A DNA stretch of 63,967 bases, filler included, from Intoshia linei (GCA_001642005.1; 8 parts of 8 records of this genome joined end to end with filler, not necessarily neighbours in it); one strand, 5' to 3'. Shown: positions 1 to 9,698, counted from the first letter of the whole stretch. Numbers and translations: made by a program. Notes: generated by a model from the sequence alone, not told the origin.

Positions 1-1280
1 CATCTTTCTTTCATTTCTCTGATCACGTAAAAAACACAAGTCTTCAGGATGTGTCTTATCAACTCGGCATTTATGTGCTAAATATCGAACAATTTATCAA
101 TTGTATTAATGAAATTATCCTCACGTAATATTTGGAACTTATGTTATATTATATATTATTATTTTATATATTATTATATTATATTATATTATATTAATGT
201 CTATGGCTTTTTTATTAAATTTTATTAATGGTGGGTTAAAGTGGGATTTTTTTAAATTTTTGTATATTTTATTTGAATCTCACGGATCCCAGGCATATAA
301 TTTTAGACCCAATCGAGAACACTGATTTAATTTATACTTATATATTTATAAAAATTACTAATTAATTGCTCGTTAAGGAAATAAAATTTTTTCAGGACCA
401 ATTATTCCCTTAACGAGGAATTAACCTGTATTTTAAGCTAAATCACTTTATACAATGAAATTTTTTTATATATAAGTAAGGATTAATGATTTATTTGTAT
501 GGAAGAATTCAAAAAGCCCCTATTTTCCAGAGCTACCTAGTATCTAGTACCTATTGTTTGTACGAAAAACAGTCAAGCTAGTAAATAAATAAAATAATAA
601 AAATGAATTGCGTAAAACCTAACATTGTAAATTTTACAAAGTGTAGTAACAAATACATGAATTATATTGAACACCTGTAATATACATTGGGTATATGGAA
701 CATGTACTTTATAGTAATTTGGTAATATCAGGTTGTATGTTCTCATTCATGAATAAAATATTTCTTAATACATAATTGTAATTTGTATTTTAAATTTAAT
801 TCGTGTTTTAATTAAACGTGGCGTTAACAAAGTTTTAAAAGGTTATTATACTGAATAAATGAAGTTTGAATTACGTTTAAACTTTAATATCCTCAAAAAA
901 CACGTAAAAAATTGAAAGTATCCTTTATATTAATTAACGTAAGTAAACGGATACAACTTAACAATATATTAATGTCAAAGCCATAGCTACATTTTTTTTA
1001 TATTATTACTGTTAATGAATTAAAATTTTAAAAAATTAAATGCTTCATTGGATTGATGTATTCTTAAAACGGAAACAATGTTTTGAAAGTTTATAATAAT
1101 TACAAAAATAACAGAAGAAGAATCATTCAACTTTCTACAGGTGATTGATTCACGATTGCTAAACACTTTTCGATAAAAATAATTTTTAATTGTATAAAAA
1201 ACTATAAATAGAACATTTTCTAAAAACTATTTGTTTTTCTATTGAATTTTGTTTACTCAGGTGCGATTAAACCAATTTAC

Positions 1281-1286
1281 CACGTG
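1281..1286. promoter_or_regulatory. CACGTG E-box in the ODC 5' leader/intron region
   Basis: Exact CACGTG (CCACGTG) about 200 nt upstream of the ODC ATG. A TATAAATA lies at ~1203. Confidence 0.3.
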
Positions 1287-1332
1287 AAACATATTTTCAT
1301 AGTTAAATTTAGATTATTATATAAAAGGCAAC

Positions 1333-1473
1333 ATTTTGAAACAGTTTGAAAATTTTTGTGAAGGCATTTTGATCACCAACTACTTTTCTCTCCGCTTGAT
1401 CAATCAAAGTCCTGTTGTTTTACATCGTGAAAATATAGATATAAACGCAGAAGTACCTTGGGACCCCAGTTGA
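1333..1473 (+). promoter_or_regulatory. Non-AUG (AUU-initiated) upstream conserved coding region (uCC) of the ODC mRNA, ~46 aa: ILKQFENFCEGILITNYFSLRLINQSPVVLHRENIDINAEVPWDPS*
   Basis: The frame is open from 1303 to TGA 1471-1473 with no ATG. In-frame ATT codons at 1333 (A at -3) and 1366 (G at -3). The C-terminus matches the AZIN1/ODC uCC end as I recall it (VLYREQFDFNAEPPWEPS*). The stop is 8 nt before the ODC ATG at 1482, in a different frame. Confidence 0.88.
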
Positions 1474-1481
1474 TAAAACTA

Positions 1482-4036
1482 ATGGATTGTTCTTATACTT
1501 TTTCAGCTTTGGGAAATTACTTTGATAAAGTAATTCAAGAAAGATCCGACAATGAAAACCATTTTGCTATAATAAACATATCAGAGATTGTAGACAAAAT
1601 TGTACGATGGAAAGCGGTTTTACCACGAGTTCAACCTTTTTATGCGGTGAAATGCAATGACGATCCCGCAATTTTATCTGTAATGGCTTCTGGCGGTGTC
1701 AACTTTGATTGTGCAAGTAAAAATGAAATTATGAGTGTTTTAAATGTTGCAAATTGTAACCGAATTGTGTACGCTAATCCTTGCAAACAAATTTCTCACA
1801 TAAAATACGCCAAAGAAAATGGTGTAACGAAAACCATGTTTGACAATAAGAATGAATTGTACAAAATTAAAAAACATTATTCTGAAGCAGATTTGTTTAT
1901 TCGATTTTGTCCTCCAAAAACTGACAAGGTTATGCTTCCGCTAGGCTTAAAATTTGGATGTTCCATGTCAGAAGTTGAAGAATTATTGCAATGTGCTATT
2001 GATTTGAATCTTAATGTGGTAGGTATTTCCTTCCATGTTGGAAGTGGTTGTTGGGATCTTGATGCTTTTCCGCTGGCTATTCAACAAGCTAGGAAAATAT
2101 TCGATATTGCTCAATCTATAGGGTGTAAAATCGAGTATTTGGATATCGGTGGTGGTTACCCTGGAACAGATGATGGAATTGTGAGTTTTGGACAAGTAAA
2201 TTTATATTTTTTATTTTTTTATACAAATTATACAATTTAATTCAAATCTTTCTAGGTTTCTCAAGGTATTAACGAGTTTTTGGATAAATATTTCCCAGTC
2301 AATATGAATATCAAAATTATAGCTGAACCTGGACGTTATTTTGTTACAACTTGTCTTACGGCTTTTTCTAATATTATTGGAAAACGCACTATTTTTAGAA
2401 CCAATGATGTCACAGATGATCTTATTGTGGATATAGCGGGTAATTATTTTTATAATTACTAAATTTTTTTTGTCAATTCCAAGGAGTCTTTGTTGGTCCA
2501 GTTTTGATCTTTAACCATAATTAAAAAACCAAAAAAGTTAAAACATTTCATAGTTGTTCATTTGATTGAAAAAAATTTTCCGAAACTGAACGACGTGAAA
2601 CGTTTTATGATATTTATATTTACATCTATTTGCACGTATATTTATAAATTTTAGAAACATGAACATTTTTTGAAAAAAAATGTAATATATTTTCATGCTA
2701 AGGGGTGGAATCTTGTTTAATTTTTACTATATATTTTTTATTTTTTATGACTCATTAATAAAGATAATATTATTTCTTGAGTATATTTATCAACCTTATT
2801 GGAAATTTCATCAGGTTTTTTAATGACTATCAATATATGAAATGCTCTTTGAGCATGTCTTATTTGCTAATTTTTTGAAACGATAATTATTTATTAACTA
2901 GGATGCAACAAAAGCGACAAAAGTTTCATGTATTATTTGAACGACGGTGTTTATGGTTTGTTTAATGCAGTATTAACTGAGAATTCCGTTCCAAAATTTT
3001 ATGCTTGTAAATCGGTAATACATTTTATGTACTATATATAGCAAGTACAATGTGTATTAGTAAAAGAAAATGAGTATAAATAAAATCAAATAATAACACT
3101 ATTTTTTGTAAAGTTTACAATCATTTATTAATATAAATACATAAAAAAATAGATTGATGGTAAAGAAAGCGAATTATTTGATTGCAGTATTTGGGGTCCA
3201 ACTTGTGATTGCCTCGATTGTTTAAATAAGCAATGTAAAATGATTGAATGTAATATTGGTGATAAAGTAATGTGTCCTAACATGGGAGCATATTCAACCA
3301 GCATAGCTTGTACTTTTAACGGAATGGAAATACCTGAAATTATGTATTGTATGAAAGACGATTCAAGGTAATTTTTAATAATAATTGTATTAATTTTTAA
3401 ATAATATTTTATGAATAACCAGTTAGTCTTTATTGACCCCTTTTGCGTCATTGTCCAATTTTGTCATTATATTGGAATTAATTTTTTTGGTTTTTGGAAT
3501 AAATTCAAAATTATTGGCGAATAATGGAACCTAGTTTATAGGAAACTGCTAACCAATTTAGTGTTTATAAATTTTACTATTATTTTAAAAAAAAGCAGTA
3601 TTTTATTAACATTTCCTTACATATTTGTTTTATACAATGTATAAATCTGAGCAATAAAACTTAAAACGCTGAGCTGTAAAATGCATATGAAAAATACAAT
3701 TTTTTGACATGCCCTTTATTCAGATCTGAGTACGAGTCCTCGTCGAGGACTGTAGTTTGAAAAAATGTTGGCGAATAACGGACTAGACGAGGTATACTGT
3801 ACAAAATTTTAGAAACACTGATATGCGAGGATTTTATCCAACATAAAAATATTGCATAGTTAGGGTACCCGGAACAAGTTTAATTATTATAATAATTCAA
3901 TTTAATTTTTACTGTACTATATTATTTTAGAAATTACAATACGTACCCATTACAACATTTTACGAATGTTAAAACTCAGACCAAGGTCAGACTAGATGGA
4001 TCAGGCTCTGAAAGTGAACATTATTTTGAATATTAA
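1482..4036 (+). CDS. ODC1: Ornithine decarboxylase family protein, ~443 aa; exons 1482-2195, 2256-2439, 2902-3014, 3153-3367, 3931-4036
   Basis: Motifs PFYAVKCN (PLP lysine), FDCAS, YANPCK, FHVGSG, LDIGGGYPG, AEPGRYF, YYLNDGVYG, WGPTCD, NMGAY, TFNG. All introns are GT-AG with consistent phase. AATAAA follows the stop. The last exon is less certain. Confidence 0.95.
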
Positions 4037-7187: not shown

Positions 7188-9698
7188 ATGAAAAGAGAAT
7201 TACTGGACGGTACGAATATCTCTGAAATTTTAAAGAAACAAGATGAATTTATAAAATCTGGAAAAGAAACGTCATGTCAATTATCAAAACCGACAAATAA
7301 ACCAGATATATCTGAAACGGTACAAGACATTATATTGAAAACGACGACAAAGAAATTTGTTTATGAAAAAAAAAAGACAAATAAACCAAAACCAATGCAA
7401 GACTATAAAAGTGATTTAAATTATAAATCAAGGTTAAAAGATAAACTGTCAAATAAAATGGAAACTAAAAGTGACACGTGCAGTGAATTGAGTTGTTTAA
7501 ATTTGAAAAGACAAAATAAAATTACAGAAAATGAAGTATTTTTTACTATAAATGGATATTTATCAAATAATGATTATGAAGAATCCTATACGCTGGGAAA
7601 TTTGATAATATTGGTTCAAAGTGTGATTAATCAACAAGTCGTATTTGGAATGAAAATTTTGTCAAACATTGTTAGAAATGAAATTGAGGGAGTTTTCATG
7701 CAGGACAATTTTGATAAAATGCCCATTTTTGTTATTTTTAAAGATTTCAAATTTGGTGACATTTTAAATAGGTTATTGAAATCTTTATCGGAATCAATAA
7801 TATATTGTGTCATGTATTTTTTGTCTAATTTGTTTTACAACGAAAGATACGAGGATGAAATAATTACGCAAAATTTTTATAAATGTCATTTTTATACTCT
7901 TCATTGTGATTTTATTTTTGAAACATTATGTCATGTTTATTTGTTGAAAAAGATTGTTGCGTGTTTACCTATCAATGATCAATTTCGGGCGATTTGTACG
8001 AAGGTGCTTGTTGGTATATTTAATGTAAACTCGGAAATTTCGGATCGCATTGTATGTAATACGCAGTTGTTGGAATATTATCATTTAAAACCAGCCTCTT
8101 TTGAATCTCTATTTTTTATTATAAAATGTTTAAACTTTGGTTCAATCGGTTTAAATTGTGAATTGAACCGTTTACATCAGCAATCTGGCGAAATAAACAG
8201 ATTAGACAACTTTGAATCTTTACTTCGTTTGTATAAAGAAACGTTCCAATATAATGATAAAATTATTCCTTATTTGGACGGCACAGGTACAATGTATTTA
8301 AAAAATCTACATAATGTACCAAAACCCATTGATGGTGTATCTTTATCTACGTTATGTAATAATTTGAATAATAACTTGATAAAATTGAAACAATTTAATT
8401 ATAAGAGTCCTAATATTACTGAAAAATACAATACATGGTTGGTTCACATTAGTTACTTGCACCTAGAAAACTACCTCAACGTTAAAACTAAATTTTTAGA
8501 TTCTTTCAATTTAATTTATAATTTTTCTCATCACTTTAAATTGTCAAATATTGTCCTGTTATACAAAACTTTAAGAAATGTACTAAATATTCAACAGATA
8601 CATTTACTACCACAAATATTGGTTAAATGTATATCTATATTCATTTTTACAGTTAATTCTATTGAAATTAAAAACGATCAAAATATAGATGCAATTTTTA
8701 CATTATTGGACCATTTAATGAAAAAAATGATTCAAGGTTCAGAAAAATTGGTCATTATTATCTTATACACGACATTATATAAACTTTCAGGTAAAATCCT
8801 ATCAATTTCCAAAACTGACATTTGTTCTTATATGGAAGGCTACTTTAATAATTTTGATGATGAAACTAAAAATTTTAAAGATTACACCACAATTTCCGAT
8901 TCCAAGTATGAATTGAAAGAAATGATTTACGCGGCTTGTCCAAAATTTTGGACATTAAATTTTATATTTATATCTCAACCTTGGTATTTGATAGAAAATG
9001 AAACATTTATTAAAAAAATACCATTTTTAAATGTATCTATCCTTATTATAACAAAATATATTAAAATGAATGGAATTTCACACGTTGAGACTCATTTAGA
9101 GCATATATCCAATTTTTTTTTGAATGACGAAATTTACAGTGCATGCTTATGTATTAAAGATACTGTAGATTTACTTTTTTTTACCATGTTTGATATTGTT
9201 CACAAACACAATTTTACTGTTAAATCAGTTGATAAATGGATCAAAATTTTTTATGAAAGTATTCACCAATTTGCCGCAATTTCGTATGGTGATCCCATTT
9301 TTGTAAAGTACATTATTCTTCTTTTAACTTGTTTCAATTGGAATCAACGAATCGATTGCTTATTATTCATTGTCAACAAATTTGATTCTCATGTTGTTAA
9401 TTTGCTAAAGATTCAACATTTTCATTTTCTTAAAAATTTGTTTGTTTTAAATACACCAAAAAATCAATTCTTTAATGTTACTCAAGTTTCGAAAGACAGG
9501 AATTGTATTTTCTTTTTTTTTAATTTTTTTGCAAAGAATTATAAACCAGAAAAGTATTTTAATGTCATTTATTCCATTATTATTATTCTGTTGAATACAT
9601 TTATTTATTTAACCAATGTTTCGAATGAATTTGTTCAAATGCAAAATCACATTTATTTATTTATCTCTAAACACAAAAATTCGGTAATCAAATTCTAA
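7188..9698 (+). CDS. RPAP1: RNA polymerase II-associated protein 1-like, 836 aa, single long exon
   Basis: SYTLGNLIILVQSVINQQVVFGMKILSNI resembles the RPAP1_C motif GYTLxEL..RS...QQ. HQFAAISYGDPIF resembles the C-terminal FAAVSFGD motif. The N-terminal EILKKQDEF also fits. Confidence 0.75.
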   Translation: MKRELLDGTNISEILKKQDEFIKSGKETSCQLSKPTNKPDISETVQDIILKTTTKKFVYEKKKTNKPKPMQDYKSDLNYKSRLKDKLSNKMETKSDTCSELSCLNLKRQNKITENEVFFTINGYLSNNDYEESYTLGNLIILVQSVINQQVVFGMKILSNIVRNEIEGVFMQDNFDKMPIFVIFKDFKFGDILNRLLKSLSESIIYCVMYFLSNLFYNERYEDEIITQNFYKCHFYTLHCDFIFETLCHVYLLKKIVACLPINDQFRAICTKVLVGIFNVNSEISDRIVCNTQLLEYYHLKPASFESLFFIIKCLNFGSIGLNCELNRLHQQSGEINRLDNFESLLRLYKETFQYNDKIIPYLDGTGTMYLKNLHNVPKPIDGVSLSTLCNNLNNNLIKLKQFNYKSPNITEKYNTWLVHISYLHLENYLNVKTKFLDSFNLIYNFSHHFKLSNIVLLYKTLRNVLNIQQIHLLPQILVKCISIFIFTVNSIEIKNDQNIDAIFTLLDHLMKKMIQGSEKLVIIILYTTLYKLSGKILSISKTDICSYMEGYFNNFDDETKNFKDYTTISDSKYELKEMIYAACPKFWTLNFIFISQPWYLIENETFIKKIPFLNVSILIITKYIKMNGISHVETHLEHISNFFLNDEIYSACLCIKDTVDLLFFTMFDIVHKHNFTVKSVDKWIKIFYESIHQFAAISYGDPIFVKYIILLLTCFNWNQRIDCLLFIVNKFDSHVVNLLKIQHFHFLKNLFVLNTPKNQFFNVTQVSKDRNCIFFFFNFFAKNYKPEKYFNVIYSIIIILLNTFIYLTNVSNEFVQMQNHIYLFISKHKNSVIKF

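Follow-up and report, generated by a model that had tools for sequence, protein, structure and literature searches.

In the leader of the AZIN1 (antizyme inhibitor) mRNA there is an upstream conserved coding region (uCC), reportedly worked out by Ivanov, Loughran and Atkins in 2008 and by Ivanov et al. in 2018. uCCs of ornithine decarboxylase (ODC) homologs have been reported in six animal phyla; the animal uCC starts at a non-AUG codon in good context, most often AUU, carries a pair of adjacent prolines close to its end in almost all examples, and finishes with Pro-Ser (PMC2811004). This end has been written as the motif PPWxxPS-stop (PMC10855120), and the Pro-Pro of PPW has been described as crucial for polyamine control (PMC8705083). 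We have analyzed a stretch of DNA of 63,967 nucleotides (the window) from Intoshia linei (GCA_001642005.1), an orthonectid that parasitizes ribbon worms, in which an ATG-less frame lies just before the ATG of an ODC gene. Judged by its sequence, this frame (1333-1473) is probably genuinely homologous to the uCC through which ODC and antizyme-inhibitor mRNAs are autoregulated, and it is found here on the only ODC of a very small, AT-rich animal genome.

In the model developed for AZIN1, the weak AUU is passed by most scanning ribosomes, which start at the main AUG. High polyamines interfere with eIF5A, ribosomes translating the uCC then pause at its conserved end, and the queue behind them extends to the AUU and raises initiation there; translation of the main open reading frame (ORF) drops because a ribosome that has translated the uCC fails to reinitiate (PMC2811004, PMC8705083, PMC9082881, PMC10855120). 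The peptide of the AZIN1 upstream ORF (uORF) is printed in a figure legend of PMC9648851, where its last 18 residues are VLYREQFDFNAEPPWEPS. Two other systems are of interest for the final codons. Termination at the Pro-Ser-stop of the yeast HOL1 uORF, MLLLPS-stop, is sensitive to eIF5A and polyamines (PMC10855120), and the short uORF of plant AdoMetDC also ends in Pro-Ser-stop, with a polyamine-pathway gene downstream (PMC2811004). These uORFs resemble the Intoshia frame in having Pro-Ser-stop upstream of a polyamine-pathway gene, but they are short, AUG-started and not homologous to the uCC, and they can serve as a model only for sensing at VPWDPS-stop.

The frame in the window, read from 1303, is ...SPVVLHRENIDINAEVPWDPS; it ends NAEVPWDPS at a TGA (1471-1473), and a spacer of 8 nt (1474-1481) separates this stop from the ODC ATG (1482-1484). 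The original prediction, made from the sequence alone, had described this arrangement, and it is confirmed: positions 1081 to 1481 are free of ATG, the closest one upstream is that at 1078, as had been proposed, and the in-frame ATT codons at 1333 and 1366 indeed both have a purine at −3. The former (aacATTt, A at −3) lies 46 codons before the stop and the latter (ggcATTt) 35 codons before it. The downstream gene is, as predicted, ODC: its first coding exon matches Orn_Arg_deC_N, the pyridoxal-binding domain (Pfam, E 1e-63), and, in a homolog search, shows about 50% identity with the ODCs of animals and fungi. The span first given to the element needs one correction. Its frame and 3' end were right, but positions 1303-1312 belong to an intron and are outside the mRNA.

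Evidence for the mature transcript came from contigs of four runs in two studies, dated 2016 and 2024, aligned to positions 600-4000. The runs are not labelled as RNA, yet their contigs show splicing within the ODC gene at GT..AG sites, and we therefore took them as transcript assemblies; they report on splicing and not on transcription start, expression level or ribosome positions. Positions 1313-1481 are joined to the ODC coding sequence in contigs of all four runs, and no start or splice downstream of about 1400, which would have removed the frame from the mRNA, was seen in them. The features of the leader are the following.

1023..1140, plus strand: 5' non-coding exon of the ODC mRNA; spliced contigs of runs X5 and X1 join 1140 to 1313, and the contigs begin at 1023 and 1057.
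1040-1096 (18 codons), 1056-1067 (3 codons) and 1078-1086 (2 codons), plus strand: AUG-started uORFs in the 5' exon, from the scan of the spliced leader; their presence in the mRNA depends on the transcription start.
1141..1312, plus strand: leader intron of 172 nt, GT..AG; joint 1138>1311 with the cut at +2, in two runs.
1313-2195, plus strand: exon carrying both the uCC and ODC coding exon 1, from contig joints.
1333..1473, plus strand: candidate uCC from ATT 1333 to TGA 1471-1473, 46 sense codons, ATG-free, from the ORF scan of the spliced leader.
1364..1385, plus strand: 22-nt stretch around ATT 1366, with 19 of 22 bases the same as in the leader of another ODC contig (L016, discussed below); local alignment score 29.
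1417..1470, plus strand: conserved C-terminal core, VLHRENIDINAEVPWDPS; the only match of the uCC profile in the genome (E 4.3e-5 within the window), and an alignment.
1471-1476, plus strand: tandem in-frame stops TGA TAA, read in the sequence; the second stop is in the 1474-1481 spacer.

In the spliced leader the frame extends upstream into the 5' exon as far as the stop at 1065-1067, giving 77 ATG-free codons. This stop is that of the 1056-1067 uORF, the only one of the AUG-started uORFs to share the uCC frame. Further in-frame near-cognate codons are ATT 1125, ATC 1122 and TTG 1083. When the leader was shuffled by a Markov model, about 0.5% of the shuffles had an open frame of this length ending no more than 30 nt from the ATG, and the last 18 codons of the uCC have 39% GC compared with 28% for the leader, which is compatible with constraint.

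For comparison, metagenome and metatranscriptome contigs were searched with an alignment of ODCs, which gave 80 ODC loci. Thirteen of these have, on the same strand, an ATG-less upstream frame that ends ...(L/F)(D/N)(F/V)NAEPPWDPS-stop or in near variants of it; the exception is L005, which has an in-frame ATG near the contig start. In these relatives the distance from the uCC stop to the ODC ATG is 48-143 nt and PPW is invariant. An ATT is found 46-50 codons before the stop in 11 of the 13; its context is (a/c)(a/c)aATTc or close to that, and −3 is a purine. Their ODCs are of the animal type, nearest to mollusc, tunicate and placozoan sequences. The Gigantopelta ODC contig, which ends 586 nt upstream, was left out of the uCC scan.

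A profile was built from the 13 aligned frames with the window excluded. Searched against the whole assembly (41,603,068 bases, 3520 contigs) in six frames, it gave a single match, at 1417-1470 on the plus strand (18.1 bits, E 0.16). Against all six-frame ORFs of the window the same frame scored 18.9 bits (E 4.3e-5), and the second-best ORF 3.7 bits. No profile score above 7 bits was obtained in control loci from Nematostella and Mytilus that total 63 kb. Nor was a uCC-like frame found within 10 kb upstream of ODC in these two loci (P0004 for Nematostella, P0010 for Mytilus); they may represent uCC-less paralogs, or their leader exon may be farther upstream. Residue by residue, 13 of the last 15 positions of the window frame hold residues seen in the relatives at the same positions, including GC-rich Pro codons. 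No Pfam family matches the 56-residue upstream frame, and none would be expected of a uCC.

Other attributes of the uCC class are also found here. The frame belongs to the leader of the mature ODC mRNA, where it precedes the main ORF and is distinct from it, it has no in-frame AUG, and a near-cognate AUU in good context, the putative start, is placed at the spacing seen in the family; ATT 1366 is a possible alternative start alongside it. The C-terminal peptide is recognisable by sequence, and Pro-Ser stands directly 5' of the stop (CCC AGT TGA, 1465-1473). The frame shares with the AZIN1 uCC its location in an ODC-family mRNA leader, the lack of AUG and an AUU with purine at −3 some 46-52 codons before the stop. 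The two ends, VLHRENIDINAEVPWDPS in the window and VLYREQFDFNAEPPWEPS in AZIN1, align without gaps with 12 of 18 residues identical, and both are followed by the stop after Pro-Ser. The vertebrate end given in the original prediction is exactly the one printed in PMC9648851, and the assignment to the uCC family is borne out by the 13-frame profile, the ATT spacing and the AZIN1 end, the peptide aligning with both the relatives and AZIN1. The differences from AZIN1 are that the window frame is on ODC itself, has Val for the first Pro of PPW and a spacer of only 8 nt, and has an unrelated N-terminal part without an IPP.. start; its polyamine response would follow by analogy. The invertebrate ODC uCCs that we recovered (L003-L012, L029, L033, L037, L077) are likewise on ODC mRNAs, end ...(D/N)xNAE.PWDPS-stop, have an ATT 46-50 codons before the stop and no in-frame ATG. 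They differ in having the invariant PPW, QGGF and SPEG motifs and the longer spacer (48-143 nt), whereas the window frame has VPW, no upstream motifs, the 8-nt spacer and tandem stops.

Several observations weigh against homology to a working uCC. The genome-wide E of the profile match is only 0.16, and its weight comes from its position beside the ODC start. The N-terminal two thirds of the window frame aligns without the family motifs IP.., QGGF and SPEG. Two adjacent prolines near the C-terminus are missing, since the first Pro of PPW is Val in the window frame (GTA CCT TGG, 1453-1461, with GTA at 1453-1455). Finally, the up to three AUG-started uORFs of the 5' exon could dominate the control of the mRNA. 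The weak genome-wide E is, in our view, outweighed because the sole match falls in the leader of the genome's only ODC and on its coding strand; a whole-assembly search found one ODC homolog and no separate AZIN, and the chance of such a position (about 300 nt of 83 Mb of strand) is a few in a million. VPW is better regarded as a rare exception than as grounds for exclusion from the family, because almost all, and not all, uCC examples are said to have the two prolines (PMC2811004).

One other Pro-Pro-less variant came from the comparison set. The upstream frame of L016 ends ...KVDCNAELEWEPS, that is, NAELEWEPS before the stop, and its leader has the 22-nt ATT stretch in common with the window. 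The local alignment of 1364-1385 with this leader scored 29, compared with a mean of 17.4 (sd 2.6) for shuffled sequences, 6 of 2000 of which reached 29. L016 differs in that its frame is ATG-started, the in-frame ATG being 7 nt upstream of the shared ATT, which is itself out of frame with the conserved end. The L016 ODC is no closer to the window ODC than are the ODCs of other animals (50% identity). The sequence (L016:68-199) is from the metatranscriptome contig Ga0307385_10030411, which also retains an intron in the N-terminal region of ODC.

The remainder of the polyamine pathway in this genome is of relevance to whether such an element would still be of use. An antizyme homolog (ODC_AZ) is present, with a score of 31 bits, above the Pfam cut-off (G000:C261:13540-13794, minus strand, locus L002). 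Its first frame ends ...CAG TAT TTT TGA C and the conserved domain resumes in the +1 frame; TTT TGA resembles the UUU-UGA site for +1 frameshifting, which has been described as a variant in nematodes, flatworms and fungi (PMC1874602). Genes for deoxyhypusine synthase and eIF5A are present too. Six-frame searches of the whole genome found neither AdoMetDC (PF01536, TIGR00535) nor spermidine synthase (PF01564, TIGR00417). The spermidine branch may be absent, with uptake from the host replacing it, or these two genes may have escaped a search made exon by exon.

The alternative that survives best is that the frame is a decaying relic, derived from a uCC but no longer polyamine-sensing, its Pro-Pro stall site having been lost, and acting at most as a weak constitutive upstream frame. 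VPW in place of a PPW that is invariant in 13 relatives would fit such decay, yet the Pro-Ser-stop, itself a known eIF5A-sensitive site, was retained, and so was the ATT spacing. The N-terminal part is unrecognisable and the genome is highly reduced and AT-biased, whereas the last 15 residues keep their agreement with the relatives, GC-rich Pro codons included, and a stop-free frame of 46-77 codons was kept in a leader of 28% GC, as rarely happens in the shuffled leaders. The undetected AdoMetDC and spermidine synthase imply that the usual feedback loop may be rewired, and L016 provides a second non-PPW variant; against this, the antizyme with its frameshift site is still present. On balance we consider a relic unlikely.

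It is very improbable that the frame is open by chance in an AT-rich leader and resembles a uCC at its end only by accident. Open stretches of at least 46 codons do occur elsewhere in the non-coding DNA of the window (31 of 1095), and the E of 0.16 alone would permit an accident; but an accident would also have to explain the 12 identities with AZIN1 over 18 ungapped residues, the ATT at the family spacing, the low scores of the control loci and, above all, the location of the sole genome match, which is on the strand to be expected and 8 nt ahead of the single ODC start; for this position we rejected a chance ORF. Least credible of all is that another gene, upstream of ODC, ends its coding sequence in this frame, or that the frame extends the N-terminus of ODC in an alternative form. 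This reading has nothing in its favor beyond the frame being open, while the frame and the ODC ATG occupy one exon in different reading frames (1333 mod 3 = 1, 1482 mod 3 = 0). The frame also ends in two stops, matches no Pfam family, and has only short non-coding sequence upstream of it in the transcript contigs; the extension was rejected for its wrong frame and two stops.

Returning to the reading of 1333-1473 as a uCC homolog, we infer a polyamine response from family membership. By analogy with AZIN1, most ribosomes would scan past the ATT of the window uCC and initiate at the ODC AUG, and the few that translate the uCC would slow or stall at its C-terminus when polyamines disturb eIF5A. 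Scanning ribosomes queued behind them would reach back to the ATT, which would lead to more uCC starts and less ODC synthesis. With Val-Pro-Trp instead of Pro-Pro-Trp, the elongation stall is possibly weak, and more of the polyamine sensing may then fall to the Pro-Ser-stop, which is retained. With the Ser codon (1468-1470) in its P site, a ribosome would reach about 16 nt downstream and cover the ODC AUG (1482-1484). A reach of about 16 nt is ordinary ribosome footprint geometry. As the stop is 8 nt from the AUG, the terminating ribosome would therefore cover the AUG and reinitiation should be poor, and each event of uCC translation would thus be strongly inhibitory for ODC.

A more specific proposal, which we find doubtful and hold slightly below even the relic in likelihood, is that stalling on the uCC has moved from elongation at Pro-Pro-Trp to termination at Pro-Ser-stop, so near the ODC AUG (8 nt) that the ribosome covers it while terminating. 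If the genome is truly without AdoMetDC and spermidine synthase, such an element would tune putrescine synthesis to host-derived spermidine, and L016, with LEW for PPW, would be a second, independent Pro-Pro-less uCC. The VPW and LEW variants could also be used to separate the Pro-Pro elongation stall from the Pro-Ser-stop termination stall.

The element is of an expected kind in a new lineage, and an unusual motif variant of the already described uCC; in the literature searched, no mention of Intoshia together with ODC was found. What the homology would mean is that a non-AUG, peptide-dependent feedback element of ODC survives, with antizyme frameshifting, in an animal genome that is among the smallest and most derived, and this survival would argue that polyamine feedback on translation is hard to lose. 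Standard gene calls usually leave unrecorded features of the kind seen here, namely the uCC, the intron in the leader and both 3' ends of ODC.

The coding part of the ODC gene was assembled exon by exon; exons were handled individually in all searches.

1482..2195, plus strand: ODC coding exon 1 (238 codons), which no intron parts from the uCC; the Orn_Arg_deC_N match and contig joints.
2256-2439, 2902-3014 and 3153-3367, plus strand: further ODC coding exons; GT..AG joints in four runs, exon translations, and tblastn with homologs.
3813-3846 or 3931-4036, plus strand: alternative last ODC exon; alternative acceptors (3367/3813, 3367/3931).

By exon arithmetic and per-exon translations, ODC is 419 or 443 amino acids long. 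The two last exons give C-termini of 10 or 34 residues after ...KDDSR, and one contig keeps the intron (3368-3840), in which a TAA is immediately 3' of the donor site. The vertebrate ODC C-terminus is a degradation tag. The protein search with exon 1 found no close relative, the best identity being 50%.

One run of the same study, X3, is labelled as another organism, which would fit host tissue. In one of its contigs 1306 is preceded by 76 unrelated letters, and a second contig joins at 1353; the 76 extra letters may represent an alternative first exon, trans-splicing or an assembly chimera.

Elsewhere, the window is AT-rich, with about 25% GC outside genes. An intron-less ORF of 836 codons, rich in Leu, Ile, Asn and Lys, occupies 7188-9698 on the plus strand and has a faint match to RPAP1_C (E 0.005, below the cut-off). 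Upstream of the ODC gene, at 120-200, there is an imperfect (TATTA)n-like simple repeat.

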